Virus record (IMG/VR): IMGVR_UViG_3300048625_000299
Location: 62,001-126,000 of that record
Length of the DNA: 64,000 nucleotides
Reading direction: 5' to 3' (one strand)
The position numbers and the translations under genes are program-made. Below are positions 1,291-38,444 of this stretch, in pieces; the stretch's first letter is position 1; every line of letters starts with the position of its first letter. The notes below the pieces were generated by a model. The model was not told where the DNA came from and ran no database searches. It worked only from the letters and a program-made list of their open reading frames with translations.

Positions 1291-1309
1291 TAATAAAATT
1301 GGAGTGTTT

Positions 1310-3106
1310 ATGGAAGATGTAGTTCACGGCATCAAGGTCGACTATTCGCGAGACCAGCTGTTCGATATATTAGGTATTAAGCGACTCAGAGAGTCGTATA
1401 TGAAAGAAGAAGAGAAGTCCCCACAAGAAAGATTCGCGTATGTATCAAATGCGTTCGGCTCAAATGAAGCGCACGCTCAACGTCTGTATAACTATGCTAG
1501 TAAGCATTGGTTGTCATATAGCACTCCTATTCTTAGTTATGGCCGCTCTGCCCGTGGTCTTCCTATATCATGTTTCCTACCTTATCTCCATGATTCGTCG
1601 TCGGGATTGGTAGACACGCTTTCAGAAGTTAACTGGCTGAGCATGCTCGGCGGTGGAGTTGGTATTGGTGTCGGCATTCGGTCAGCGGACGACAAATCGG
1701 TCGGCGTAATGCCTCACCTCCGCACATATGATGCTAGCAGCTTGGCATATCGTCAAGGTTCTACTAGACGTGGATCGTATGCTGCTTACCTTGATATCAG
1801 CCATCCAGATATTCACATCTTCTTGGATATGCGCAAGCCAACAGGTGATCCTAATATGCGTGCATTGAATCTGCACCACGGAATCAATATTCCAGATGCG
1901 TTCATGGAAATCATCGAACGCTGTATGAAGGACCCTACTGCAAATGATGATTGGGAATTGAAAGATCCCCATGATGGAGCCGTTCGCGAAGTTGTGTCGG
2001 CCAAGTTGCTGTGGCAGCAAATTATGGATCTGAGAATGCATACTGGCGAGCCATACTTGCATTTTATCGATACTAGCAATCGCATGATGCCCGAGTTTCA
2101 GAAGAAGCTTGGCTTAAGCATCAAGCAGAGCAACCTTTGCAGTGAAATTATTTTACCAACTGACAAAGAGCGTACGGCTGTATGCTGCTTGTCTTCTGTG
2201 AATTTGGAGTACTATGATGAGTGGAAAGATGACGGACTTTTTCTTCGGGACATCGCTGAGATGCTTGATAACGTTTTGCAGTATTTCATTGATAATGCTT
2301 CTGACAGCATATCGAGAGCAAAATATTCAGCTAGCCGTGAGCGCAGTATTGGTATCGGTGCCCTCGGCTTTCATGCTTATCTACAAAAGAACGACATCCC
2401 GTTCGAGAGTGCACTCGCAAAATCAGCAAACAACAAGATCTTCAAGCACATAAGATCTAATCTCGATGTTGCGAACAAACAACTGGGCGCTGAGCGAGGC
2501 GAGGCTCCTGATGCAGCTGGCACTGGATTGCGCTTTAGTCATCTTATGGCTATCGCTCCCAACGCTTCGAGCTCAATTATCATGGGAAATACTTCTCCTT
2601 CTATTGAGCCCTACCGCGCTAATGCTTATAGACAGGACACGCTTTCCGGCGCGCACTTGAATAAGAATAAGTTCTTGGATAAGATCATCCAAGTTGAGGC
2701 AGCTAACCATAAAGAAGGTTGGGCAGATGATGTGTGGTCGTCTATCATTGCTAATGATGGTTCCGTACAGCATCTTGACTGGCTATCCGATTGGAACAAG
2801 GATGTGTTCAAGACATCGATGGAAATCGATCAGCGCTGGATCATCGAACATGCTGCTGATCGCCAACAACATATCGATCAGGCTCAGTCGTTGAACGTAT
2901 TCTTCCGTCCAGATGCTAACGTCAAGTACATTCATGCAGTTCACTTCCTAGCCTGGAAGCTAGGATTGCCTACGATGTATTATTGCCGCAGCGAGAAGCT
3001 CGCGAAGGCCGACAAGGTATCGAAGAGAATCGAACGACAAGTGATCCAAGAGATTGACTTGAAGGCGGTTGCTGATGGCGATGTTTGCTTAGCATGCGAA
3101 GGTTGA
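1310..3106 (+). CDS. nrdA: class Ia ribonucleotide reductase alpha subunit (short, no obvious ATP cone)
   Basis: SNLCSEI, APNASSS, YYCR and C-terminal CLACEG; GGAG SD before ATG 1310. Confidence 0.97.
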   Translation: MEDVVHGIKVDYSRDQLFDILGIKRLRESYMKEEEKSPQERFAYVSNAFGSNEAHAQRLYNYASKHWLSYSTPILSYGRSARGLPISCFLPYLHDSSSGLVDTLSEVNWLSMLGGGVGIGVGIRSADDKSVGVMPHLRTYDASSLAYRQGSTRRGSYAAYLDISHPDIHIFLDMRKPTGDPNMRALNLHHGINIPDAFMEIIERCMKDPTANDDWELKDPHDGAVREVVSAKLLWQQIMDLRMHTGEPYLHFIDTSNRMMPEFQKKLGLSIKQSNLCSEIILPTDKERTAVCCLSSVNLEYYDEWKDDGLFLRDIAEMLDNVLQYFIDNASDSISRAKYSASRERSIGIGALGFHAYLQKNDIPFESALAKSANNKIFKHIRSNLDVANKQLGAERGEAPDAAGTGLRFSHLMAIAPNASSSIIMGNTSPSIEPYRANAYRQDTLSGAHLNKNKFLDKIIQVEAANHKEGWADDVWSSIIANDGSVQHLDWLSDWNKDVFKTSMEIDQRWIIEHAADRQQHIDQAQSLNVFFRPDANVKYIHAVHFLAWKLGLPTMYYCRSEKLAKADKVSKRIERQVIQEIDLKAVADGDVCLACEG

Positions 3107-3610: not shown

Positions 3611-4762
3611 ATGACCACGATCACCCTTCCAAAAAGAGTCCTTACCCATAAGGAAACGCTGACCAACAAGTATGGCAGCGTTGCGACGTCGGTTGTGCCA
3701 GATGCGGGAATATCGTTCGATGCTCCCGCAGTAGATAGCATTAACCGTGCTACAGCGAATACGCTCGATGTATTCAGCAACACGCTTGTACAGTATGCTA
3801 ACACCATCACCACACAAGCGACTGAGCTGCTACAGATACAAACGAGCGTCGCAACGTTGGCTGCAGCGAAAGCAAATTCTGTATCACCTACGATAGATAA
3901 TGCAACACTGAATGGTAATACTGCCATATCGAAGATTGTCGCTAATAGTTCGTTGGGTACGACTGGCCAATACTTGGCGTCTGGTGGTGGCAATAATATG
4001 TATTGGGCCACCTTTGCTGTGGCTGGTACACCATCTCTTGATGCTGTTGTTGGGGTAGGTGGCTCTACATCCAAAGCCATATCGGTAGGCAATACTACAA
4101 TCAACGGAACAGCAACAATATCGCAGCATGCGATGATTGGCCCTGTAGCTGGCAGTGTTACGTCCGGTAATCAGACGAGTCTAGAGATACGAAATAACGG
4201 AGGTACGGGTGATGGAGACGTCGCGGCTGTATCGTACCATTGTGCTGGATACTATGCTGTACATCAACATCTAAGAGCAGATGGTTACTTTGGTATCGGT
4301 GGCTGGTCAGCAGAATCGTGGAGATGGTACATCAACACCACCAACGGCGATATGACTGCTGCAGGTAACATCACCGCTTATTCTGATCCACGACTGAAGG
4401 AAGACGTCACCCCAATCGAGTCCGCGCTTGCTAAGGTGCTATCGTGGAATGGGGTCAGATATCGCTGGAAGTCAAACTCCGCGATCGGTCAGCCAGGCAA
4501 GTACGACTATGGTATTCTTTCACCGGATATCGCAGCAAATGCTCCAGAACTTGTCGTAGATTCAGTATGGGATTCGGAAGACGGCGACAAGTATAAGACA
4601 GTAGCATATCAAAAGCTGTCTCCATTCTTGATAGAAGCTATCAAGGAACAGCAAGGAATCATCGATACACAACAATCGACTATCGATAAGCTGCAAAGAC
4701 AAATAGAAGACATTATGAATCGTTTGATATCGGTTGAAGGTAACGCCGGTTCTGATTTATAA
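3611..4762 (+). CDS. tail fibre/spike protein with C-terminal peptidase S74 intramolecular chaperone (ORF track start 3557; 3611 preferred)
   Basis: G/T/S-rich fibre body; SDPRLKEDV...APELV...LIEAIKEQQ coiled coil. Confidence 0.85.
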   Translation: MTTITLPKRVLTHKETLTNKYGSVATSVVPDAGISFDAPAVDSINRATANTLDVFSNTLVQYANTITTQATELLQIQTSVATLAAAKANSVSPTIDNATLNGNTAISKIVANSSLGTTGQYLASGGGNNMYWATFAVAGTPSLDAVVGVGGSTSKAISVGNTTINGTATISQHAMIGPVAGSVTSGNQTSLEIRNNGGTGDGDVAAVSYHCAGYYAVHQHLRADGYFGIGGWSAESWRWYINTTNGDMTAAGNITAYSDPRLKEDVTPIESALAKVLSWNGVRYRWKSNSAIGQPGKYDYGILSPDIAANAPELVVDSVWDSEDGDKYKTVAYQKLSPFLIEAIKEQQGIIDTQQSTIDKLQRQIEDIMNRLISVEGNAGSDL

Positions 4763-4789: not shown

Positions 4790-5770
4790 ATGAACGCTAA
4801 AAGAAAACTTAGATTAACAGACGAACGCAGCTCATTCAAACCATTTAACTACCCATGGGCATATGACGCGTGGTTAAAGCATGAGCAAAGCCACTGGCTC
4901 CACACTGAAGTGCCGATGTTAGAGGATGTGAAAGATTGGAAAAACAAACTAACCAAGGAAGAGAAGCACTTCCTAACAAACATCTTCAGGTTCTTCACAC
5001 AAGGCGATGTGGACGTAGCTGGCGGATACGTGAAGAACTACTTGCCTTACTTCCCACAACCGGAAGTCCGTATGATGCTCACTGGTTTTGCAGCAAGGGA
5101 AGCTCTTCATGTAGCTGCTTACAGTCATTTGATCGAGACTTTAGGGATGCCGGAATCGACGTACAACGAGTTCCTTCAATACGAAGAGATGAGAGACAAG
5201 CACGACTACTTCTTATCTTTGGCGGGGCAAGATGCGACGACGATCGCACAACAGATTGCAGCCTTCTCTGCGTTTACGGAAGGGATGCAACTATTCTCCA
5301 GTTTCATTATGCTGTTGAACTTTGCGCGCCACGGCAAGATGAAGGGGATGGGACAGATTGTCACATGGTCGATCGTCGATGAAACAATGCATGCGGAAGG
5401 CATGATCAAGTTGTTCAGAACATTCATCGAAGAGAACAAAGATATTTGGAATGATGACCTCAAGGGTCAGATCTACAGCATTGCTGAAAAAATGGTTGCG
5501 TTAGAAGATCGCTTCATCGATCTTGCTTTCAGTCTGGGCGCTATGCAAGACCTAACCGCGGCAGATGTGAAACAATATATACGTTACATCACTGATCGTA
5601 GATTGATTAGCCTTGGTCTCAAGGGAATTATGAAGGTCAAGAAGAATCCTTTGCCATGGGTTGAGGAAATGATCAACGCTCCGACGCATACAAACTTCTT
5701 TGAAAATCGCGCCACTGATTATGCAAAAGGCGCAACTACTGGTTCGTGGGAAGACGTCTGGGCAAAATAA
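4790..5770 (+). CDS. nrdB: ribonucleotide reductase beta subunit
   Basis: FFTQGD, EALHVAAYS, EGMQLFSSF, DETMH, NFFE motifs. Confidence 0.97.
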   Translation: MNAKRKLRLTDERSSFKPFNYPWAYDAWLKHEQSHWLHTEVPMLEDVKDWKNKLTKEEKHFLTNIFRFFTQGDVDVAGGYVKNYLPYFPQPEVRMMLTGFAAREALHVAAYSHLIETLGMPESTYNEFLQYEEMRDKHDYFLSLAGQDATTIAQQIAAFSAFTEGMQLFSSFIMLLNFARHGKMKGMGQIVTWSIVDETMHAEGMIKLFRTFIEENKDIWNDDLKGQIYSIAEKMVALEDRFIDLAFSLGAMQDLTAADVKQYIRYITDRRLISLGLKGIMKVKKNPLPWVEEMINAPTHTNFFENRATDYAKGATTGSWEDVWAK

Positions 5771-21446: not shown

Positions 21447-21983
21447 ATGATCGACGCAGTTTATGTTCTTGGTAAGATGGGCTTGAAGCCTGGTATGTCT
21501 GTTTCACGCGCAATCACGGCTGTCGGGATTGCAATTAATGACAGTTCCGACCAGTTGAAAGCAGCAAACCGAATCATTGTATCACTTGGTGCGAAGCCAG
21601 TCAGCAATACAATCATGGCCGACATCTTTGCCAAGGCATTAGTGGAACAGGCCGTTGTCCAAGGTGCTAGCTATGATGCTGACGATGCATTTGAGGTTGC
21701 GAATGCAAAGTATCTCAAAATCGAACGGACAATGCCATTCGTGTTCGCAGGTAGCGGTGAAAGCACCACGCCAGTATATGGCACGCCTGTTGGAAATGGT
21801 GGCACTAAGAAGCCAAAACAAACAAACGACAAGAAGACACAAGCTCTTGAAATTTTCAATCGCGAGACCAGTAAGGGGTTGCCTAATTCCACAATTGCGC
21901 AGACAATTGCTACTGAGTTAGAAATCACACTGTCCAACGCCCAATACTACGTCAATCGTGTATTCGTAAAGTACTCCAAATGA
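21447..21983 (+). CDS. protein with C-terminal HTH-like domain
   Basis: C-terminus paralogous to 16461-16625. Confidence 0.75.
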   Translation: MIDAVYVLGKMGLKPGMSVSRAITAVGIAINDSSDQLKAANRIIVSLGAKPVSNTIMADIFAKALVEQAVVQGASYDADDAFEVANAKYLKIERTMPFVFAGSGESTTPVYGTPVGNGGTKKPKQTNDKKTQALEIFNRETSKGLPNSTIAQTIATELEITLSNAQYYVNRVFVKYSK

Positions 21984-23320
21984 AAATTCTCAGCATCCTC
22001 GACACGTTGGCCAATGATAATGGCCGCAACTTCAAGATTGATTACTTGACAAAGCACAAGGACAATCTCCTGCTCACACAAGTAGTGTTCTTGGCACTTG
22101 ACACATACACACAATTCTTCATTCGCAAGATTCCTGCATATACACGTGGCCCTGACACTGCAAATCTGAAGTGGGCTCTTGATAAACTATGCGATCTTTC
22201 TTCTCGTACTGTGACAGGCAATGCTGCAATCGCTCATCTTGTGAAGATCTTGGAATCTCTTGAACCAGATGATGCTCAGGTAGTTGAGCGCATCATTGAA
22301 AAAGACTTGAAGTGTGGTGTGGCAGCTTCGACCGTCAATAAGGTATGGCCTAATTTGGTCCACGAATACCCATGCATGCTTGCTAGTCCGTATGAGGAAA
22401 AGCTGGTCAACAAGATTCAATTTCCAGCATACGCGCAATTGAAAATGGACGGGATGCGATTCAATGCCATCGTCAAAAATGGCAAATGTGAGTTCCGCAG
22501 TCGTAATGGTAAATTGATCGACATCCCGTCCGACCTATTCCAACAACCATTCCTCAACATGCATGAGTACTGGGGCACCGATATGGTGTTCGATGGTGAG
22601 TTGCTTGTTGTCGATGTCGCTGGCAAGCCGCTCGATCGCAAGACTGGCAACGGCATCTTGAACAAAGCTGTTAAGGGCACAATGTCTGAGGAAGAAGCTG
22701 TTAATGTTCGTGCAACATTGTGGGACGCACTTCCGGTTGAGAATTTTGCGGTTGGCGTATACAAAGAACAGTACATCGATCGTATTGCTAAGCTATCTAA
22801 TGCGTTGTCACATATGCGTAATCAAACGCCTTTTGGTCACTTGGTTGCTCTAGTGAACCACACAGAAGTTCGTACTCCCGAAGATGCTTCACGTCTATTC
22901 CTCCAGTACCTCAAAAAGGGCGAGGAAGGAATCATCTTGAAAGATCGTTTTGGTATTTGGGAAGATAAGCGTGCCAAGCACCAGATCAAATACAAGGGCG
23001 TGTTTGAGTGCGATTTGGTCTGTGTTGGATGGGATGAGGGTACCGGTCAGAACGTAGGTCGCCTTGGTGCATTGCAGCTGGCTTCGTCATGTGGCAAGCT
23101 GACTGTCGGTGTTGGTACTGGTCTTACCGAAGAAGACCGAATCAATATCGGACGTGATGTAATCGGTAAAGTTGTTGCTGTTGAATTCAACGCAATCATC
23201 GACGATAAGAAAAAGGACACTAAGTCGCTATTTCTTCCGGTGTTTATATGTGTGCGACCGGATAAGGACGAAGCAGACTCACTCACGACTATCGAGAGTA
23301 GTGTAGTAAAACTCCTTTGA
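21980..23320 (+). CDS. ATP-dependent DNA ligase (T4 gp30-like)
   Basis: QLKMDGMR, FDGEL, EGIILK, QIKYK, LFLPVF. Confidence 0.96.
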   Translation: MKILSILDTLANDNGRNFKIDYLTKHKDNLLLTQVVFLALDTYTQFFIRKIPAYTRGPDTANLKWALDKLCDLSSRTVTGNAAIAHLVKILESLEPDDAQVVERIIEKDLKCGVAASTVNKVWPNLVHEYPCMLASPYEEKLVNKIQFPAYAQLKMDGMRFNAIVKNGKCEFRSRNGKLIDIPSDLFQQPFLNMHEYWGTDMVFDGELLVVDVAGKPLDRKTGNGILNKAVKGTMSEEEAVNVRATLWDALPVENFAVGVYKEQYIDRIAKLSNALSHMRNQTPFGHLVALVNHTEVRTPEDASRLFLQYLKKGEEGIILKDRFGIWEDKRAKHQIKYKGVFECDLVCVGWDEGTGQNVGRLGALQLASSCGKLTVGVGTGLTEEDRINIGRDVIGKVVAVEFNAIIDDKKKDTKSLFLPVFICVRPDKDEADSLTTIESSVVKLL

Positions 23321-25329: not shown

Positions 25330-25410
25330 CTTCGTAGCACGGACCCTATATAATTAACCCACTGCTAAAGATAGACTTTAGCAGGCCAACTATTCAAAGG
25401 AGCTTTGAAT
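25326..25410 (+). promoter_or_regulatory. sigma70 promoter TTGACT-17-TATAAT plus two-hairpin leader (GATAGAC-loop hairpin; SD/AUG hairpin)
   Basis: CTGCTAAAG-ATAGA-CTTTAGCAG; ATTCAAAG-GAG-CTTTGAAT. Confidence 0.85.
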
Positions 25411-26428
25411 GTCAAAAAAATACGACACTCTCGTCCTCATCGGACGCTTTCAACCGTTTCATAACGCTCACCTTGAGATCATCAAGCGTAGCACTGCGCT
25501 CTGTAATAAACTGATTGTTATTACGGGCAGCGCAAAACAGCCTCGCACATACAAGAATCCGTTCACCAGCTTTGAACGCGAGATGATGATCAAGCGTGCG
25601 ACTGCAGGTCTCGCATTGACTATCAATGTCGTCGAAAACATCGACACAATCTACAACGACCAAGCCTGGGCTGTCCGGATACAATCCATCGTGAACACAT
25701 TGGCATGCGACGGTGATAAGATCGGCATCATCGGCCACAAGAAAGATGACAGCTCATTCTACTTGGATATGTTTCCGCAATGGGGATATGAGAACGTCGA
25801 AGAGATTGCACCGCTGAGTGCTGTCAATATTCGCGACCTGTACTTCAAGCGCAACTGTAATCTCGAATTCATTCGCGGGGTGGTACCTCAAACTACTTTC
25901 GAAATCTTGCTGGACTTCAAGCAAAGCGAAGAGTATGAACAAATCATCCGTGAGCGCGAGTTCGTAGAGAACTACAAAAAGCAGTACGCATCGCTTCCAT
26001 ATCCTCCAATCTTCAGTACTGCTGATGCTGTAGTGATCCAATCCGGCCATGTGCTGATGATTCGTCGTCGTGCTGAGCCAGGCAAAGGGTTGTGGGCGCT
26101 TCCCGGCGGATATGTGAACGCAAATACCGACAAGTCTGTTGAAGCTGCAATGCTCCGAGAGCTCCGCGAAGAAACAAAGATCAAAGTTCCCGAGCCAGTC
26201 CTGCGTGGTAATATCGTTCGCAGTAAGGTGTTCGATGCTGTCGATCGTAGTCCTCGTGGCCGCATTATCACTCATGCATTCCACATTCAGTTGCCAGACG
26301 GCGAGCTGCCAAAGGTCAAAGGATCTGATGATGCTGAAAAGGCACGTTGGGTTCCGATTGCTGAAGTGAAGAGCGAAGACTGCTTCGAAGACCACTTTGA
26401 AATTCTCCAACACTTTTTGGGAGCTTAA
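25409..26428 (+). CDS. natV: bifunctional NMN adenylyltransferase / ADP-ribose Nudix hydrolase (NadM-Nudix, NatV-like)
   Basis: GRFQPFHNAH, KNPFT, Nudix box GG...RELREET, GSDDA. Confidence 0.95.
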   Translation: MSKKYDTLVLIGRFQPFHNAHLEIIKRSTALCNKLIVITGSAKQPRTYKNPFTSFEREMMIKRATAGLALTINVVENIDTIYNDQAWAVRIQSIVNTLACDGDKIGIIGHKKDDSSFYLDMFPQWGYENVEEIAPLSAVNIRDLYFKRNCNLEFIRGVVPQTTFEILLDFKQSEEYEQIIREREFVENYKKQYASLPYPPIFSTADAVVIQSGHVLMIRRRAEPGKGLWALPGGYVNANTDKSVEAAMLRELREETKIKVPEPVLRGNIVRSKVFDAVDRSPRGRIITHAFHIQLPDGELPKVKGSDDAEKARWVPIAEVKSEDCFEDHFEILQHFLGA

Positions 26429-29650: not shown

Positions 29651-29725
29651 CAATGGGGTTATGCTATACTGTAATCAAGCCCTCGCGATAGACGTGAGGC
29701 ATTTTAACTGTTAAGGAGATTAACA
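29642..29725 (+). promoter_or_regulatory. sigma70 promoter TTGACA-17-TATACT plus the same two-hairpin leader
   Basis: CCTCGCG-ATAGA-CGTGAGG; TGTTAA-GGAGA-TTAACA. Confidence 0.85.
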
Positions 29726-31122
29726 TGAAACTGAGCAAAAACATTCTACTGAACACAGACAGCTACAAAGTGTCAATGTGGAAGCAATACCCTGTTGGAA
29801 CAACTGGCGTATTTTCTTACATCGAATCGCGTGGCGGTCGTTATGATCAAACAGTGATGTTTGGTCTGCAAGCGTTCATCAAGGAGTACTTACTTGACCC
29901 CATTACACAGTCCGACATCGATATCGCCGAAGAGATTCTTCTCGCACACGGAGAGCCATTTAATCGTAGCGGCTGGCAGTATATCCTCGACAAGCACGAC
30001 GGATATCTCCCCGTCGTCATCCGAGCAGTCCCCGAGGGTACTGTGGTACCGGTTAAGAATGTCCTCGCAACCATCGAGAACACAGATCCCAACGTACCGT
30101 GGCTGACTACATGGCTCGAGACTCCCTTGCTTCGTGCGATCTGGTATCCAACTACTGTGGCAACACAGAGCTGGTCGATTCGCAAAGTGATTTTGGATTA
30201 TTTGGAGAAGACTGGTGACCCTGCTCTTATCGATTTTAAGTTACACGACTTTGGTGCTCGCGGTGTTAGTTCCCTTGAGTCCGCTGGCATTGGCGGCGCC
30301 GCGCACCTCGTTAATTTCATGGGTACCGATACTGTTACCGGTTTGTTGTATGCTCGTGAGTATTACAACGCTGGTATTAGTGGGTTTTCAATTCCTGCAG
30401 CCGAGCACAGCACAATCACAAGTTGGGGCCGTGACGGAGAAGTCGACGCCTACCGAAACATGCTTACAAATTTCGCTCGGCCCGGGTCCATTGTTGCAGT
30501 CGTTTCCGACAGCTACGATGTATTCAATGCCGCTAGCAAATTGTGGGGAGAAGAGCTCCGTCAGCAAGTGATTGATAGCGGTGCTACTGTAGTGATTCGT
30601 CCTGATAGTGGTGACCCTGTTGAAGTCAACCGCAAGTTGATTGAGATCTTAGGAGAAAAGTTTGGATACACTACAAACGCCAAAGGATTCAAAGTCCTCA
30701 ATAATGTTCGCCTCATCCAGGGGGACGGTGTCAATGAGTTATCCATCCGCAGTATCCTTGGGGCACTCATGGCAATGGGATGGTCGGCAGATAATATTGC
30801 ATTCGGTATGGGCGGTGCCTTGCTCCAGCAAGTTGACCGAGATACCCAGAAGTTTGCAATGAAATGTTCTTCTGCGAAGATCAATGACGTGTGGGTCGAT
30901 GTACAAAAAGATCCAGTCACTGATAGTGGCAAGAAGTCGAAGGCAGGTCGAGTGACTCTTTGGAAGAGTGGCGGCGAATGGATCAGTAGCGTTGAAAAGC
31001 CAGCTGGCTGGCACGATAAAGCAACTGGTGAGTTTGTTGAAGTGCTGGAAACAGTATACGCTAACGGAAAGTTGATTAACGAATATACATTCGACAACAT
31101 CCGAGCAAGAGCTCGCAAATAA
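29725..31122 (+). CDS. nadV: nicotinamide phosphoribosyltransferase
   Basis: TDSYK, HDFGARG, AAEHS, VSDSYD, IRPDSG, QGDG, GMGGALLQ. Confidence 0.97.
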   Translation: MKLSKNILLNTDSYKVSMWKQYPVGTTGVFSYIESRGGRYDQTVMFGLQAFIKEYLLDPITQSDIDIAEEILLAHGEPFNRSGWQYILDKHDGYLPVVIRAVPEGTVVPVKNVLATIENTDPNVPWLTTWLETPLLRAIWYPTTVATQSWSIRKVILDYLEKTGDPALIDFKLHDFGARGVSSLESAGIGGAAHLVNFMGTDTVTGLLYAREYYNAGISGFSIPAAEHSTITSWGRDGEVDAYRNMLTNFARPGSIVAVVSDSYDVFNAASKLWGEELRQQVIDSGATVVIRPDSGDPVEVNRKLIEILGEKFGYTTNAKGFKVLNNVRLIQGDGVNELSIRSILGALMAMGWSADNIAFGMGGALLQQVDRDTQKFAMKCSSAKINDVWVDVQKDPVTDSGKKSKAGRVTLWKSGGEWISSVEKPAGWHDKATGEFVEVLETVYANGKLINEYTFDNIRARARK

Positions 31123-31657: not shown

Positions 31658-31852
31658 ATGGAATACACATTAGTGATTTGGACAGTTGTTGCTGCATTTG
31701 GTACAGGAGCTGGCACATATAGGCCGCAAGAGTATCGAGATTGGCGACCGCTAGCCGTTTTCAATAACGGTGGCGCTCAATCAATGAACCAGTGTCAGGC
31801 AGCCGCTGAACAATTAAAGCTGCAAAAGTTTGAATGTATCAGAACCAAGTGA
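31658..31852 (+). CDS. small exported Cys-pair protein
   Basis: Hydrophobic N-terminus; C...C pair. Confidence 0.6.
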   Translation: MEYTLVIWTVVAAFGTGAGTYRPQEYRDWRPLAVFNNGGAQSMNQCQAAAEQLKLQKFECIRTK

Positions 31853-31862
31853 AGGAAAGAAA

Positions 31863-32903
31863 ATGCGTAAACTTGCATCCATTCGTCGGATCGACGAACT
31901 GAACCCTATTGAGGGTGCCGACAAAATCGAAGTAGCAACCGTTGGTGGTTGGAAAGTCGTGTGTCAAAAAGGTCTCTATAATGTCGGAGATCTTGCTGTG
32001 TACTTCGAGATCGACTCGTGGATTCCATCTGCTGTTGCTCCGTTTCTGACAAAGGACGGCCACTTCCCCAAAGTGTTCGAGGGTGTTGAAGGTGAACGTC
32101 TAAAGACAATCCGCTTGCGCGGACAATTGTCTCAAGGTCTGTTGATGCCTATACACAACGACAAGACTGGCACATATTTGATGGTCTACACAGATGAAAC
32201 TGGTGAATATTCGCTGACTGTAGCCGAAGGTGATGATGTATCTGAGCCTCTTGGTATCCTGAAATGGGAGAAGGCAATCCCTGCTCAGCTCGCTGGCATT
32301 TCTCGTGGCAACTTCCCAACTTTGATTCCAAAGACCGACCAAGAGCGTGTGCAAAACTTGAAGAAAGAGATTGCTGCTGCTCAAGGACAAGTCTACGAAG
32401 TGACGGAAAAGCTGGAAGGCTCATCGATGACTTGCTATGTAATTGATGGTGAGTTCGGAGTATGCTCCCGTAACCTCAACCTCAAGGAAACTGAGGGCAA
32501 CTCATTCTGGAATGCAGCTCGCGACAATGACCTCGAGCAAAAAATGCTTGCTCGTCAGTACGACTTTGCAATCCAAGGTGAGTTGATTGGTCCTGGCGTT
32601 CAAGGTAATATCTACAAATTGACAAAGCCTGAGTTCTATGTGTTTGACATCTATGATGTTAAGGACGGCGAGTATATGAATCCAGCTGCACGTCGTCAAT
32701 TGGTTGAGTCTCTTGGCCTGAAGCATGTACCGATTCTGGACGATATGTATGTCCTTAACGATGATGTAGAACAACTGTTGACGTTAGCCGAAGGCAAGTC
32801 TAGAATGTTTGATACAGAACGAGAAGGCATCGTGTTCAAACAGAATGACGGTGGCATGACGTTCAAAGCGATCTCGAACAAGTACCTATTAAACGAGAAG
32901 TGA
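31863..32903 (+). CDS. RNA ligase, DRB0094 family
   Basis: N-terminal PIEGADKIE module; EKLEGSS, QGEL, EGIVFK, FKAISN. Confidence 0.93.
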   Translation: MRKLASIRRIDELNPIEGADKIEVATVGGWKVVCQKGLYNVGDLAVYFEIDSWIPSAVAPFLTKDGHFPKVFEGVEGERLKTIRLRGQLSQGLLMPIHNDKTGTYLMVYTDETGEYSLTVAEGDDVSEPLGILKWEKAIPAQLAGISRGNFPTLIPKTDQERVQNLKKEIAAAQGQVYEVTEKLEGSSMTCYVIDGEFGVCSRNLNLKETEGNSFWNAARDNDLEQKMLARQYDFAIQGELIGPGVQGNIYKLTKPEFYVFDIYDVKDGEYMNPAARRQLVESLGLKHVPILDDMYVLNDDVEQLLTLAEGKSRMFDTEREGIVFKQNDGGMTFKAISNKYLLNEK

Positions 32904-32922
32904 TTTAAGTTTTCTCCCCTTT

Positions 32923-32948
32923 GCGCCGGCTTGACCGGCGTTCTTTTT
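32923..32948 (+). terminator. rho-independent terminator candidate
   Basis: CGCCGG-CTTGA-CCGGCG then TTCTTTTT. Confidence 0.75.
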
Positions 32949-33302
32949 ATGAACAATCCATTACTATTCATCACAGACATGCTCGCCGCAGCAAAGAAGT
33001 CGTTTCAGGCTGCTGTGGAAGAGCGTAAAAAGAGAGAGCTCAATGCTGAGCGCAATCTCATCGCAAAGCATTTCAACAACTACTACACATACCGCCACCG
33101 GTTCGATACATCAAGTAATGAGCGTTTGGATGGAACTGGGATGTGGGGGTTCACACCATTAAAAGGAAATGCGTGGATGTGTCCGACGTGCAATAAAATC
33201 CACTTGGCATCAAGCTGTAGTGCATTTTCCGGTTTACAATATCCACATTGCTGTGAGTATAGATCACACCACAGGCTATACAACGACATCAGAACGCAAT
33301 GA
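32949..33302 (+). CDS. hypothetical Cys/His-rich protein
   Basis: CPTC...C...HCC. Confidence 0.6.
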   Translation: MNNPLLFITDMLAAAKKSFQAAVEERKKRELNAERNLIAKHFNNYYTYRHRFDTSSNERLDGTGMWGFTPLKGNAWMCPTCNKIHLASSCSAFSGLQYPHCCEYRSHHRLYNDIRTQ

Positions 33303-33826
33303 CGCCACTATCGGAACACCTCAGACGACGACACTTGGATATTGAGCTCCACCGTCCAGTGATAGACGAGGTGGATAGAATTGCTACGTTCTATTTGTGG
33401 AACCTCAGCGGTGCGATTGTAGGATTCCAGCAATACCGTCCAGAGGGCGAAAAGAAGATCAACAACAATCCCAAAGAAGGCAAGTACTACACCTATAAGA
33501 AGCAACCTACGATTGCAGTATGGGGCGTAGAATCGCTTTACCTCTCACCGCACGTAGTGTTTATTACGGAAGGTGTATTCGACGCTGCTAGGCTGACTGA
33601 ACGAGGATATAGCGCGTTGGCAATGTTGACTAATAATCCAACATCAGACTACCGCAATTGGTTGACATTCTTGAACAGAACTGTTGTTGCAGTATGTGAT
33701 AATGATAAGGCTGGCAAGAAGCTAGCAGCATTTGGTGATGTTGCAATCTTCACCGAAGACAAAGACCTTGGTGATAGTGATGATGAATATGTCACCAACT
33801 TGCTATTGCCATACAAATTGGACTAA
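33299..33826 (+). CDS. stand-alone TOPRIM (primase-like) protein
   Basis: ITEGVFDA, CDNDKAG, KDLGD. Confidence 0.82.
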   Translation: MTPLSEHLRRRHLDIELHRPVIDEVDRIATFYLWNLSGAIVGFQQYRPEGEKKINNNPKEGKYYTYKKQPTIAVWGVESLYLSPHVVFITEGVFDAARLTERGYSALAMLTNNPTSDYRNWLTFLNRTVVAVCDNDKAGKKLAAFGDVAIFTEDKDLGDSDDEYVTNLLLPYKLD

Positions 33827-33834
33827 AGGATAAT

Positions 33835-34401
33835 ATGGTTATGAAAACATTTATTACAAGCGATATCCATTTCGGACACAAGAACATTATGAGCTTCTGT
33901 CCAGTATCACGTGCTCGCTTCAAGGGCGACGTGGACTACATGAACGCTCAGATCATCCAAGACTGGAACAATATGATTGGTCCAGACGACTTGGTGTATA
34001 TCTTGGGCGACGTTGCATTCTGCTCATGGGAGAAGGCTGTTGGCTTCTTGCGTTCGATGAACGGTCGCAAGATTTTGATCAAGGGTAACCATGACAGCAA
34101 GCTCGTCAAGAGTCCAGAGTTCGTTGCCTGCTTCGAAAGCATTCACGACTACTTGACAATCACATACAATGGCACTCGAGTGTCGATGTTCCACTATCCA
34201 ATTGCTGAGTGGGATCAGATGCATCGAGGTGCTGTCCACTTCTATGGTCACTTGCATGGTGGCACTAGCGGATTGGAAAAGTACCGAGCAATCGATGTTG
34301 GTATGGATGGCAATATGTGCTACCCACATGACATGGATGTTGCTGTGGCAACTGCATTGAAAGGTGAAATCAAAAAGCACCATGACAAATATGGGAACTA
34401 A
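33835..34401 (+). CDS. calcineurin-like metallophosphoesterase
   Basis: SDIHFGH, LGD, GNHD, GHLH. Confidence 0.93.
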   Translation: MVMKTFITSDIHFGHKNIMSFCPVSRARFKGDVDYMNAQIIQDWNNMIGPDDLVYILGDVAFCSWEKAVGFLRSMNGRKILIKGNHDSKLVKSPEFVACFESIHDYLTITYNGTRVSMFHYPIAEWDQMHRGAVHFYGHLHGGTSGLEKYRAIDVGMDGNMCYPHDMDVAVATALKGEIKKHHDKYGN

Positions 34402-34402
34402 T

Positions 34403-34873
34403 ATGAGCAAATTAAAATGCATTCAATTGGTTGGCGTGCCTGGATCAGGAAAGTCAACGTGGATTAAAACACAAACGATGATCGACAACTTCGTTGTTGC
34501 GTCTACGGACAACTTTGTTGAGCAGCATGCTGCTAGCGAAGGTAAGACGTATAACGAAGTGTTCAAGGATTACATGCCGATTGCTGTAAGGTTGATGGCG
34601 AATCAGGTGTTAGTTGCGCAAGCGAATAACAAGAACATCATCTGGGATCAGACGTCCATGAGCGTTGCATCTCGTAAGAAGAAGTTCAACACGATTCCTA
34701 ACTACGAGCACATCGCTGTTGTGTTCCCTGTTCCTGGTGAGGAAGAGCTGGCACGTCGCTTGGCAAGCCGTCCAGGAAAGTTGATTCCAGATCACGTTAT
34801 GAAAAGCATGATCGATAGCTTTGAGATGCCGACCCTCGAAGAAGGGTTCACTGAAGTTCACGTGTTGCTGTAA
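34403..34873 (+). CDS. P-loop polynucleotide-kinase-like protein (AAA_33)
   Basis: GVPGSGKST, WDQT, RxxxR lid, PTLEEGF. Confidence 0.88.
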   Translation: MSKLKCIQLVGVPGSGKSTWIKTQTMIDNFVVASTDNFVEQHAASEGKTYNEVFKDYMPIAVRLMANQVLVAQANNKNIIWDQTSMSVASRKKKFNTIPNYEHIAVVFPVPGEEELARRLASRPGKLIPDHVMKSMIDSFEMPTLEEGFTEVHVLL

Positions 34874-34884
34874 GGAGTATTGAA

Positions 34885-35145
34885 ATGGTGGTGTTTCCAA
34901 AGGAGTTCGTTGCGATTCGTTATCCAGGATACTTCTGGCACACAGTCGAGAAGCGCTTGTACACGATTAAAGTGTCTGGCGAACTCCGTCCATTGAAATT
35001 CTGCCGTGGTGGTACGTTCTATGGCAAAACAATTGAGCCTGGTTATCGTGTAAGTGTGCAAGGTGTACGTAAGAAAGTATCGATGACCTATCTGGGTAGC
35101 ATTGGCAACTCATGGGTACAACAAGAGATTCCATATGAAAGTTAA
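34885..35145 (+). CDS. hypothetical protein
   Basis: AAGGAG SD. Confidence 0.65.
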   Translation: MVVFPKEFVAIRYPGYFWHTVEKRLYTIKVSGELRPLKFCRGGTFYGKTIEPGYRVSVQGVRKKVSMTYLGSIGNSWVQQEIPYES

Positions 35146-36022
35146 TTCAGCATCACTGAAGAAGTTCGTTGAAGAAAATCCAAAGCTGGTATCTCGTCGT
35201 CCAGCCGGTGATGGCATCTACGTCCTGAAATACAAAAAGACTGTATTCTATGATGGTCTGTGGAACGATTACTTAGAAGAGTGTCGTGGTACGATTGTGG
35301 ATGAAGATTACAACATCGTGTCATACCCATTCACGAAGGTATACAACTATGGCGTAGAAGCGAAGTCCCCTGTACTAGATGGCAGTACGAAGATCAAAGC
35401 ATACCGTAAAGTTAATGGCTTTATGGTCGCTGTAACGTGGCATAAAGACGATATCCTTGTGTCAACTACAGGATCAACGGACTCCGATTATGTAAAAATG
35501 GCTCGTGAGTTTATCGATCGTGATTTGGATCTATACCGTGCTTGGTGTAAGGAATATTCGACATACACATTCATGTTTGAATGTGTCCATAAGGATGATC
35601 CGCACATCATTCCAGAAGTGGAAGGGATGTATTTGCTAGGACACCGTCCAAAGTTCTTTGGTTCACCAATTGGTGTGTCTGACGATATGCATAAGGCATT
35701 CAACTGCCATTCGGTTGAAGCAATTGAGTGTACGTTAGATACACTACGTTCGTTAGCTAAGACAGTGAAACACGAAGGGTTTGTATTATATACGTTGGAC
35801 GGCATGATAGGCTCTAAGATCAAGAGTCCACATTACCTAGTGTCTAAGTTTGTTGCTCGTAATCCACGAACTGACAAATTGATGCGTCCAGATGTGAAGA
35901 AGTCACTCGATGAGGAGTATTATCCATTAATCGATGCCATCCAAGCGAACATCGATGCGTATACTGCTATGGACGAACAGACGCGATTAGCGTGGGTGAG
36001 GGAGTTTCTTTCAACTCAATGA
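35135..36022 (+). CDS. Rnl1-like RNA ligase
   Basis: ECRG, FTKVYN, KVNG (motif I), FEC, EGFVL, KIKS. Confidence 0.88.
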   Translation: MKVNSASLKKFVEENPKLVSRRPAGDGIYVLKYKKTVFYDGLWNDYLEECRGTIVDEDYNIVSYPFTKVYNYGVEAKSPVLDGSTKIKAYRKVNGFMVAVTWHKDDILVSTTGSTDSDYVKMAREFIDRDLDLYRAWCKEYSTYTFMFECVHKDDPHIIPEVEGMYLLGHRPKFFGSPIGVSDDMHKAFNCHSVEAIECTLDTLRSLAKTVKHEGFVLYTLDGMIGSKIKSPHYLVSKFVARNPRTDKLMRPDVKKSLDEEYYPLIDAIQANIDAYTAMDEQTRLAWVREFLSTQ

Positions 36023-36671
36023 GGATTCTTCTAGCAAGAGCGTTTCGCGATGCTTTGCTAGGGGAGCCAAGAATCACGATGATGTGTTCGTTGGTCGTCA
36101 TTGCGATACACCAACCTGCAGCATTAGTGAATCCAGTCTTTGACCCAGTAATATGGGTAAACTCTTTTAACAGAGCATAGTTGGTATTTTGAATGAGGGC
36201 CAGATGAGCCCTCTTTCCTTTGGGCTCTATAACTTGAACAGTGGGTGCTGCTGCCGCTCTTATTTCTGCATACTTGGTAGCATGTGCTATTAAGATAGCG
36301 ATGTCGACTGCTGTAGAAGTGTTCATGCCGAGCCCAGACGGATCGACGAACTTTGTATCATTCATTCCAAGCTGCTTTGCTTTGAAATTCATCAGATGGA
36401 TGAATTGTGGTCTGCCATAGATTGCAGCCAACTTCTCGGCGGATTTGTTGTTGCTTTGTACGAGCATTGTGTCGATTAAGTAGCGATCATCGATGCCAAG
36501 TTCGATTGCTATGATTGCTGTCATCAGCTTCGTGATACTAGCTAGCGGACGTTGTGATGATTCATCTTGCTTCGCTACTACCCGATTGTGCTTCATATCA
36601 AACACAAACACTGACTCCTTAGCGAACGCTGGCGCAGCAAGCAGCAGTAGAGTGAGTAGTAGTTTCTTCAT
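35967..36671 (-). CDS. secreted serine DD-peptidase (peptidase S11, Dac/PBP7-like)
   Basis: Signal peptide; SITK (SxxK), SNN (SxN), DPSGL, KTGFT. Confidence 0.92.
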   Translation of the reverse strand: MKKLLLTLLLLAAPAFAKESVFVFDMKHNRVVAKQDESSQRPLASITKLMTAIIAIELGIDDRYLIDTMLVQSNNKSAEKLAAIYGRPQFIHLMNFKAKQLGMNDTKFVDPSGLGMNTSTAVDIAILIAHATKYAEIRAAAAPTVQVIEPKGKRAHLALIQNTNYALLKEFTHITGSKTGFTNAAGWCIAMTTNEHIIVILGSPSKASRNALARRILIELKETPSPTLIASVRP

Positions 36672-36779
36672 ATATTAGTACCCCGTTTATGTCCTCCCAC
36701 CTGGCGTAGTGGGATGTAGTAGGACGGGGTCACTCCTTTTACACCTGTCGTAAGTTTAACGGTCCTAAGGCAGGTATGT
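36672..36779 (-). ncRNA. structured intergenic/leader RNA: stem-enclosed segment antisense to 23S H69-H70, AAGGAG, then a 51-nt hairpin before the AUG
   Basis: Inverted repeats ACCTG/CAGGT, ACCCC/GGGGT, GTCCT/AGGAC, CCCAC/GTGGG; rRNA similarity from recalled sequence. Confidence 0.55.
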
Positions 36780-38444
36780 TTATAGTGCAATCTGCGACAC
36801 AGTCACAATTACAGACGGAATTGCAGGACAGAAGGCAGTTGCTGCAGGAGCCGCTATGAACGCTCCAAGGTTACTGACAGCCCACATAAGCTCAAAGTAA
36901 TCGTTGGTGTTCATCGATACTTGGAAGTTCCAAGATGGAACCTTATACTCTTCGTTGCCTGTAATGGTGAGTATCGATGCTGTGTTGGGAATATCAGCGC
37001 CATTCTTTCTCGCCCATATGTATATTTCCTTTTTAGATGCTGTTTGCGAGGTAACCTGCAATGAAAACTTATAGTCGTAGAATCCAGACGCTTCTGCTAC
37101 TATTCTCGTTTCATTGATGATGTGGTGTCCATTAGAGATGTCAGGAGTGCGCATCTTCACAGCATATGGAGTGTTTATTACGGCTGCTGTCTGGCTGAGT
37201 ACATCTAAGAAGGTTCCATAATACAAACGTGGATATATCGTTGGGCGAACCAGTAATATACCATCCCCACTACCTACGTGGAGTACAGCAGCAATGCTTA
37301 CTACTATATTTGGTGCGTATGGTTTGACCTTTGTTAGTTTGCCAGCCATAGTCGGGTGGACGTAGAGCAAGTCGCCTTTTACCCATACTTCTCCAACGCT
37401 CGAGCCAGTCGTATCCATATCATGCACTTTACCGTTCCATGTAGCACGACCAGTGGTATTGTTTGGTAAATCGTTTGTCAATACGCCAACAGTATACAAT
37501 CCATGCACAGTACCGTTAGCGATGTGTGGGACTACGATCGGTTCGTGTGCATTAGCTTCATATACGCCAGCAAACCTAACAACAGTACCATTAGGCATAG
37601 TAGTACCGCTCTCGTTGCGGACGCGTATGTAGTGCTCCAGACCTGTTTGTAATGTGGATCCATCAGCGTGGTGAATGTCCAAACAATCCTCATCAGGATT
37701 CCAAGCAACTTGACCTGCAACAAGACTGACGTCTGGTCCTATAGTATTGTATCTTGTTGTCTTGATTGGTCCTATATCTTCGGTGAACTGTACTTTCTTA
37801 GTCGCAGCGTCATATTCCAATACCCAGTTATCATTTGTGGTATTCATTGTGCCACGATTAACATCATCGAGGTAGCGGAATAGTACCTCACCGCCGCCAG
37901 GGCCAGCCATGCTGATTTTGCTAACCCATCCTTCAAGCAATTTCAACTTGTTTTGGATTGCCTGGATGTCCCTACCCGTAGCAGCGGGCTCTGGTTGTAC
38001 GAACATCGAAGGTGCAGTTGTGTCTGTCAGTCTCTTTGCTGCTGCATCCGCCAACGATGGTGTTTCGGGCGGAGCAAGTATTGCAGACTTCTCGACCAAC
38101 TCATCGAACTGTTGATCCTCAACCACTTCTTCAGTTATAGTCACTTGTCGATCATCGGATTCCGGCTTTATGGATTCAATGTGTTCTAGGACATTGGTAA
38201 AGCGGTCAAGCAGTGCCTGCTCTTCTTCTGTTTTCTTTTTGTCTTCTGCGACGAGCTTATTGATGTCCTTAGCGAGGTCTGTGAACAGCGATTTGAACGC
38301 TGTCTTGCGCTCCTCCTGCATCGCAAGCTGTCTATCCTCTTTCAGCTGCTCTGCAGCGATTTGGTCATAGATTGACTGCTCAGTTTGTACGCCGAGCTTT
38401 TCATTCATCTTGACTATTAATCGTAATTCTTTTAGCTTATTCAT
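36780..38444 (-). CDS. probable virion structural/appendage protein
   Basis: N-terminal coiled coil, GGGEV, beta-rich C-terminal domains; ATAAATA at 38451-38457. Confidence 0.7.
   Translation of the reverse strand: MNKLKELRLIVKMNEKLGVQTEQSIYDQIAAEQLKEDRQLAMQEERKTAFKSLFTDLAKDINKLVAEDKKKTEEEQALLDRFTNVLEHIESIKPESDDRQVTITEEVVEDQQFDELVEKSAILAPPETPSLADAAAKRLTDTTAPSMFVQPEPAATGRDIQAIQNKLKLLEGWVSKISMAGPGGGEVLFRYLDDVNRGTMNTTNDNWVLEYDAATKKVQFTEDIGPIKTTRYNTIGPDVSLVAGQVAWNPDEDCLDIHHADGSTLQTGLEHYIRVRNESGTTMPNGTVVRFAGVYEANAHEPIVVPHIANGTVHGLYTVGVLTNDLPNNTTGRATWNGKVHDMDTTGSSVGEVWVKGDLLYVHPTMAGKLTKVKPYAPNIVVSIAAVLHVGSGDGILLVRPTIYPRLYYGTFLDVLSQTAAVINTPYAVKMRTPDISNGHHIINETRIVAEASGFYDYKFSLQVTSQTASKKEIYIWARKNGADIPNTASILTITGNEEYKVPSWNFQVSMNTNDYFELMWAVSNLGAFIAAPAATAFCPAIPSVIVTVSQIAL

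Follow-up and report, generated by a model that had tools for sequence, protein, structure and literature searches.

We identified a previously undescribed structured RNA of about 105 nt that is shared by a group of uncultured jumbo and T4-like phages and whose first hairpin carries an invariant loop core that is exactly antisense to a conserved stretch of 23S rRNA. The element was found in a window of 64,000 nt (64 kb) from the IMG/VR contig 3300048625_000299 (234.9 kb), where it fills a 108-nt spacer between two minus-strand genes. This suggested that it may be a phage RNA that grips the host ribosome. However, pairing with 23S rRNA is inferred from sequence alone, and it is about equally likely that the complementarity is coincidental and that the loop is bound by something else.

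The search started from an initial annotation of the window, which had described an intergenic resemblance to helices 69-70 of 23S rRNA enclosed by a short stem. This observation was confirmed. The window sequence TGTCGTAAGTTTAACGGTCCTAAGGCAG matches nt 1906-1933 of E. coli K-12 rrlH, GGCCGTAACTATAACGGTCCTAAGGTAG (positions 4165-4192 of sequence record L001), at 23 of 28 positions without gaps and with 14 contiguous bases, and the E. coli sequence given in the annotation was correct. It is the best 28-mer match of the window to 23S on either strand, while the next best reach 20-21. The mismatches lie opposite 23S 1906, 1908, 1914, 1916, and 1931; as had been claimed, two are in the H69 loop and the 1908 C>U change would keep a U-G pair. 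The flanking ACCTG and CAGGT were also found as described. Taken alone the match is borderline, since 9 of 145 mononucleotide shuffles of 23S gave a match of at least 23/28 somewhere in the window (p about 0.06) and a 14-mer match to 23S is expected about once per window, as the annotation had cautioned. Two details were corrected. The motif lies 70-85 nt upstream of the peptidase AUG and not just upstream of its Shine-Dalgarno (SD) sequence, and the term late mRNA remains an assumption because the neighborhood otherwise consists of nucleotide-metabolism and RNA-repair genes on the other strand.

Table 1 Features of the window, and of other contigs where stated, that are discussed in the text.
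Position	Strand	Feature	Description
36672-36779	-	Whole conserved RNA element	Fills the intergenic spacer; covariance-model match 36668-36783
36746-36773	+	Match to 23S	TGTCGTAAGTTTAACGGTCCTAAGGCAG; contiguous match 36757-36770; flanked by ACCTG (36743-36747) and CAGGT (36771-36775)
36741-36777	-	Hairpin 1	Stem AUACCUG/CAGGUGU (36771-36777 with 36741-36747, one U-G pair) closing a 23-nt loop
36748-36770	-	Loop of hairpin 1	CCUUAGGACCGUUAAACUUACGA; antisense to 23S about 1910-1931, with 3 unmatched bases opposite C1914-A1916
36757-36770	-	Family-invariant core	CCUUAGGACCGUUA; perfectly complementary to 23S 1917-1930
36733-36738	-	Linker	AAGGAG; resembles an SD sequence, but no start codon follows at the proper distance
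36678-36733	-	Hairpin 2	P1 GUGACCCCG/CGGGGUAC; large invariant internal loop (CCUACUACAUC at 36713-36723; GAGGACAUAA at 36687-36696); P3 UCCCAC/GUGGGA (36695-36714)
35967-36671	-	Downstream gene	234-aa S11 D-Ala-D-Ala carboxypeptidase-like protein with an N-terminal signal-like peptide; AUG 6 nt after the last P1 pair of the family structure (U36677), 8 nt after the core P1 pair A36679
36780-38444	-	Upstream gene	554-aa tail-fibre-like protein; stop codon 2 nt before the base of the hairpin 1 stem
36668-36790	-	40-codon ORF	Runs through the element
31830-36022	+	Cluster resembling RNA repair	Rnl2-like RNA ligase (31830-32903), phosphoesterase (33835-34401), polynucleotide-kinase/AAA_33-like protein (34364-34873), T4 gp63/Rnl1-like ligase (35102-36022)
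35967-36022		Convergent overlap	56-nt overlap of the Rnl1-like gene (+) and the S11 peptidase gene (-), with no terminator between them
25409-26428, 29725-31122, 1304-3106, 4790-5770, 21980-23320		Metabolism and replication genes	NAD salvage genes (NMNAT/NUDIX-like, nicotinamide phosphoribosyltransferase), both ribonucleotide reductase subunits, and an ATP-dependent DNA ligase
L004 3270-3911		GIY-YIG homing-endonuclease-like ORF	Ends inside hairpin 1
L056 195-409; L061 about 4045-4258		Spacer of about 215 nt in a phage tRNA array	Unannotated; carries a hairpin-2-like module
L071 4547-4602		Hairpin-1-only version	In a 306-kb contig, just after a tRNA-like gene

To determine whether the spacer is conserved, we collected copies by three routes: pattern scans of IMG/VR, JGI metagenomes, and GTDB genomes; look-ups of contigs encoding homologs of the peptidase; and a covariance model built here (R1). 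Together these gave 20 distinct full copies and 2 partial ones (alignment A3; loci are denoted by L numbers). The contigs include ones of 105-306 kb, some encode a virion protein 56% identical to one of the T4-like cyanophage S-RIM8, and one record is labeled freshwater. The window element scores 126.5 bits with R1 (E 1e-23), and only one copy occurs in the 64 kb. The spacer is nearly unchanged in contigs whose peptidase is only 67-72% identical and whose upstream gene is different, and it is 86-92% identical to copies whose peptidase gene is only 68-69% identical at the nucleotide level. The element matched no described RNA family. In Rfam 15 there was no hit in the whole window at the gathering threshold, the best hit in an E-value scan over 36600-36850 was 16 bits against a 38-bit cutoff, and related loci contained nothing but tRNAs. 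Megablast and blastn searches of the region and of two element variants found nothing in INPHARED (50,697 deposited phage genomes). The model also found nothing at the homologous position of cyanophage S-RIM8, in the T4 tRNA/rnaC/rnaD region, or in Limnohabitans phage DC31.

The alignment revealed a two-hairpin RNA in which all three helices covary. On A3, 94.8% of cells form standard pairs against 33-53% when the partners are slid by 1-3 columns, 13 of 21 pairs show changes on both sides, and 0 of 500 shuffles reach the observed values; an alignment of 18 sequences gave similar results. Hairpin 1 has a 6-7 bp stem closing a 21-25 nt loop. Its helix is 99.2% paired in 20 sequences, and 4 of 6 pairs change on both sides (ACCUG/CAGGU, ACCUA/UAGGU, CCACU/AGUGG, ACACAC/GUGUGU). 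The linker is AAGGAG or AAGGUG in 18 of 20 copies, while L098 has AGGGAG and L109 has AAGGCG. In hairpin 2, a lower stem P1 around CCCC/GGGG, in which 5 of 8 pairs change on both sides, is followed by an invariant asymmetric internal loop (CCUACUACAUC and GAGGACAYAA). The upper stem P3 is freely replaced in sequence and length (CCAC/GUGG, CCGC/GCGG, GUAG/CUAC, AACA/UGUU, UGCA/UGCA, or a short form capped by GCAA). The predicted energy of hairpin 2 in the window is -23.7 kcal/mol (z -2.9). A coding reading of the ORF that runs through the element was rejected, because P3 length differs by 1, 8, and 10 nt between copies and the stems covary.

We next asked which strand carries the RNA. Single-sequence folding did not discriminate the strands; the assignment rests on covariation and G-U counts. 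Across the helices there are 15 G-U cells and 1 A-C cell, and the U-G pair of the window in stem 1 is U-A in L107. The GCAA tetraloop reads correctly only on the minus strand of the window, and the element points the same way as the next gene in 19 of 20 full copies; in L106 two opposite-strand genes follow it. These results place the RNA on the minus strand, as the initial annotation had proposed, so that the loop is antisense to 23S.

The loop core CCUUAGGACCGUU shows no substitution in the 20 full and 2 partial copies, while the stems, P3, and neighboring genes differ; L004 has one 1-nt deletion and L072 has one extra C. Scans that specified only hairpin 2 returned copies that all carry CUUAGGAC(C)GUU in loop 1, and look-ups through peptidase homologs, which specify neither motif, did the same wherever the element is present. 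The 14 contiguous bases of the original match coincide exactly with this core. With its usual neighbors, (A/G)CCUUAGGACCGUUA, it is perfectly complementary to 23S 1917-1931, which covers the 3' part of the H69 loop, the H69 3' strand, and the strand leading to H70. Two or three variable bases lie opposite C1914-A1916, and the UU(AC) that follows in most copies matches 1910-1913. RNAduplex gave -31.2 kcal/mol for the window loop with 23S at 1908-1932. For eight loop variants this site was always the best rRNA partner, at -25 to -32 kcal/mol, compared with -12 to -21 kcal/mol for the best 16S or 5S sites, and 0 of 300 loop shuffles reached the observed value. With naked 23S fragments, the predicted net gain after opening both hairpin 1 and H69 is -19 to -20 kcal/mol. 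The apical ACCGUUAA is predicted to be more than 80-90% unpaired, but the 5' part of the core (UAGG) can form a weak inner 4-bp helix and the mean predicted unpaired probability of the core is 0.59. The target stretch is identical in six of seven bacterial lineages sampled (E. coli, Ralstonia, Azospirillum, S. aureus, C. difficile, and Cetobacterium). Actinomycetota (a Pseudarthrobacter 23S fragment, L121) read GGUGG...CCAUC in H69 where other bacteria read GGCCG...CGGUC, and the phage loop would therefore mismatch their 23S at two positions. Near-copies of the core elsewhere in the window are no more frequent than chance (4 found against 2.1 expected).

Two hairpin-1-only relatives keep the core with other partners. 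In L071 the loop carries UACCUUAGGACCGUU, the stem takes in part of the SD, and the hairpin sits directly before the AAGGAG and AUG of an Rnl2-like RNA ligase (motif FEKLDGSN). L078 has a different second hairpin. Conversely, the tRNA-array spacers of L056 and L061 carry CCUACUACAUCC, a short hairpin, and then GGAGGACAUAAG, closed by UCUGGGU/ACCCAGA, with no hairpin 1 and no Rfam hit. This may be another small RNA built on the same scaffold. The idea that this scaffold carries guide sequences was not supported, as no rRNA complementarity was found.

The genes flanking the element varied among copies. The downstream gene of the window was assigned to S11 peptidases (Pfam PF00768, E 1.5e-31; PHROG peptidase), while for the upstream gene tblastn found tail-fibre and C1q-like proteins (best Limnohabitans phage DC31, 52.7% over 56% of the query) and the PHROG tail-fibre match was weak. 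Among the 20 full copies, the downstream gene encodes an S11 peptidase in 6, a GH19 lysozyme-like protein in 6, a NUMOD3-repeat/HExxH protein in 3, a 112-aa protein in 3, and an unknown protein in 1, while the remaining copy is L106. The upstream gene is usually structural: tail-fibre-like, a virion protein, or a small protein of about 120 aa ending ...RARHNCD..YWSCKAW. The motif is thus present in related phages, stays invariant while the flanks diverge, and lies upstream of cell-wall enzyme genes in 12 of 20 copies, and so the refutation test set by the initial annotation did not refute its idea. However, the element also precedes non-cell-wall genes, it is followed by opposite-strand genes in L106, a 67%-identical peptidase gene (L105) abuts its upstream gene with no element, and distant peptidase homologs also lack it. 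The element is therefore a portable intergenic module of structural/lysis regions and not a peptidase-specific operator.

We consider the structure, strand, invariance, complementarity, and context of the element to be established by the comparative analysis, whereas its transcription, the ends of the RNA, its physical pairing with 23S, and any effect of that pairing are inferences. The interpretation in the initial annotation is therefore partly supported: its strand and conservation predictions hold, its alternative of a plus-strand H69 decoy is disfavored, and mRNA-23S pairing that recruits or controls ribosomes is unproven. Our tentative explanation is that the element is transcribed with the minus-strand genes, as part of the tail-fibre/peptidase mRNA or cut out of it, and that loop 1 base-pairs with host 23S rRNA. 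In mature ribosomes nt 1920-1931 are paired or buried, so only a subpopulation of 23S could be reached. The most plausible partners would be 23S not yet locked into a mature 70S ribosome, namely nascent or pre-50S particles or free 50S in which H69 is mobile. The adjacent AAGGAG could hold a 30S subunit at the same time. The element would then act as a ribosome-binding module in structural/lysis-region transcripts, either tethering subunits next to the downstream start codon or locally blocking subunit joining; sequence does not decide between activation and inhibition. H69 forms the central bridge between the ribosomal subunits and is a proven antisense and antibiotic target, and a PNA antisense to H69 blocks translation and growth of E. 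coli (Kulik et al. 2017, as cited in PMC12828698), which shows that H69 can be reached. Phages are known to reshape translation with proteins and tRNAs, but we found no natural RNA that targets large-subunit rRNA by base-pairing, and literature searches for mRNA-23S pairing or for the motif strings found nothing relevant. If the loop does bind, this would be a natural antisense RNA aimed at the large ribosomal subunit, used to capture, position, or disable ribosomes, and a new way for a virus to control host ribosomes. It would also be a ready-made natural design for antisense inhibitors or ribosome tethers. Even on the cautious reading, this is a new and well-supported structured RNA family in a poorly known group of freshwater jumbo and T4-like phages, often placed in front of lysis enzymes.

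An alternative that we consider equally likely is that the element is a leader, a processing or stability element, or a small RNA cut from the transcript, whose invariant loop is read by a phage or host protein or by another RNA, or docks within a tertiary fold. The same structure and conservation evidence applies. The site was picked because of its 23S similarity and many windows may have been scanned, so a coincidence with a conserved loop is possible. The other invariant unpaired motifs (CCUACUACAUC, GAGGACAYAA) have no rRNA complementarity above background, so invariance in this family does not require an rRNA partner, and the hairpin-2-like module of L056 and L061 indicates that the scaffold is used in other settings. 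In addition, most of the target is not freely accessible in mature ribosomes, the target never varies so the loop cannot show covariation with it, and the positions opposite 1914-1916 vary. On the other hand, we calculated that a given 15-mer occurs in 4.6 kb of rRNA, counting both strands, with a probability of about 1e-5, and that a chance 14-mer match, about one per window, would land on the few positions of this core with a probability of a few times 1e-5. Fifteen contiguous invariant bases in an open loop are also more than most protein sites need, and no convincing partner was found inside the element, where the best candidate pseudoknot between loop 1 and hairpin 2 is 4-6 bp (UAGG(AC) with (GU)CCUA) and shows no covariation. 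Weighing these points, we consider the complementarity about as likely as not to be more than coincidence.

The remaining explanations are unlikely. The loop could descend from a captured antisense scrap of a host 23S gene, since phages pick up host DNA and the match is too good for chance at the family level, but only 15-17 nt match and nothing beyond them does, Rfam large-subunit rRNA models do not hit, and strict invariance of exactly the complementary bases implies ongoing selection on them. A constraint on DNA, such as a homing-endonuclease target, an I-CeuI-like site, or a module-boundary sequence that promotes recombination, is still less likely. Homing-endonuclease-like genes abut the element in 4 of 20 copies (a GIY-YIG gene in L004 and NUMOD3-repeat proteins with an HExxH motif, which follow the element, in L009, L018, and L067), and the element sits at junctions where the upstream or downstream genes differ. 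However, the compensatory stem changes, the excess of G-U over A-C, and the variable-length P3 capped by GCAA are signatures of RNA, and the endonuclease genes are more simply explained by their habit of targeting conserved sequence. L004, whose peptidase is 98% identical to that of the window, has the most deviant hairpin 1, with a different stem as well as the core deletion. A plus-strand RNA that mimics H69 as a decoy for rRNA-targeting nucleases or modification enzymes is very unlikely despite the 23/28 resemblance to H69-H70, because the 15 G-U cells would become C-A mismatches, an H69-like inner stem is not kept in L010, L004, or the L070-type copies, the plus-strand fold does not form it, and the gene orientation fits the other strand. 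A chance match in an ordinary spacer or a simple terminator of the tail-fibre gene is equally improbable and is already contradicted by the comparative data, as the spacer covaries and is more conserved than the genes around it. No terminator was called at 36672-36779, and hairpin 2 is followed by ACUAAUAU rather than a U-tract.

We compared the element with known systems. It most resembles antisense and small RNAs that present a seed in a hairpin loop, such as the CopA/CopT and RNAI/RNAII kissing systems, in that a covarying stem displays a conserved single-stranded stretch perfectly complementary to another RNA, with a YUNR-like CUUA at the start of the loop. It differs in that the putative target is a ribosomal RNA rather than an mRNA or a replication primer, and in its large loop. 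The synthetic H69 PNA is antisense to the same small region but is man-made and reportedly covers 1907-1919, whereas the phage loop core covers 1917-1931. In the window, L004, L005, and L107, an AAGGAG lies just 5' of a stable hairpin and the AUG lies 6-9 nt past its 3' end, so that folding would bring the SD and the start codon to a normal distance, as in the hairpin-bridged SD of phage T4 genes 38 and 25. This geometry does not fit the GH19-, NUMOD3-, or 112-aa-gene-linked copies or L106; most family members have the next start codon 20-80 nt further on with its own SD, or no co-directional gene at all (L106), and this cannot be the general role of the family. Phage T7 RNase III processing sites are likewise intergenic, about 50-60 nt long, and placed between genes of one transcript, with upper and lower stems around a conserved internal loop, and the predicted shape of hairpin 2 is compatible with such a site, but only one copy occurs in the 64 kb whereas T7 has about ten per genome, and there is no sequence similarity. 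The put RNAs of phage HK022, which act on RNA polymerase in cis, are also two-hairpin, cis-encoded RNAs of about 70-100 nt within a transcription unit with conserved unpaired bases, but there is no sequence or Rfam relationship and no evidence for antitermination, and put has no rRNA complementarity. The plus strand shares the central TAACGGTCCTAAGG of the I-CeuI recognition region of 23S rDNA, but only these 14 bp of a site of about 19-26 bp are shared, with 5 mismatches in 28, and the flanking recognition positions differ. The element is not a 23S gene fragment or pseudogene, as only 14-17 contiguous bases match and the flanks are unrelated. It is also not a box C/D or H/ACA guide RNA, since it contains no UGAUGA or CUGA and the complementary stretch lies in an apical loop and not in a pseudouridylation pocket.

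The late-promoter-like motif of T4-like and cyano-myoviruses, NATAAATA, lies 5-16 nt upstream of hairpin 1 in 7 of 20 copies (L009, L067, L070, L072, L073, L076, and L098), where the element may be the 5' end of a late transcript. None of these is in the window lineage, and TATAAATA is not enriched in the window, so a T4-type late promoter was rejected there. The two minus-strand genes around the element form an islet inside an otherwise plus-strand metabolism and replication region. The adjacent RNA-repair-like cluster also flanks the element in the close relatives of the window (L004, L106, and L107), by descent, but is absent from the other loci, which does not support a link between the element and RNA repair genes. 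The convergent overlap of the peptidase gene, there with an AAA_33-like or RNA-ligase gene, was also seen in L106, L107, and L109.
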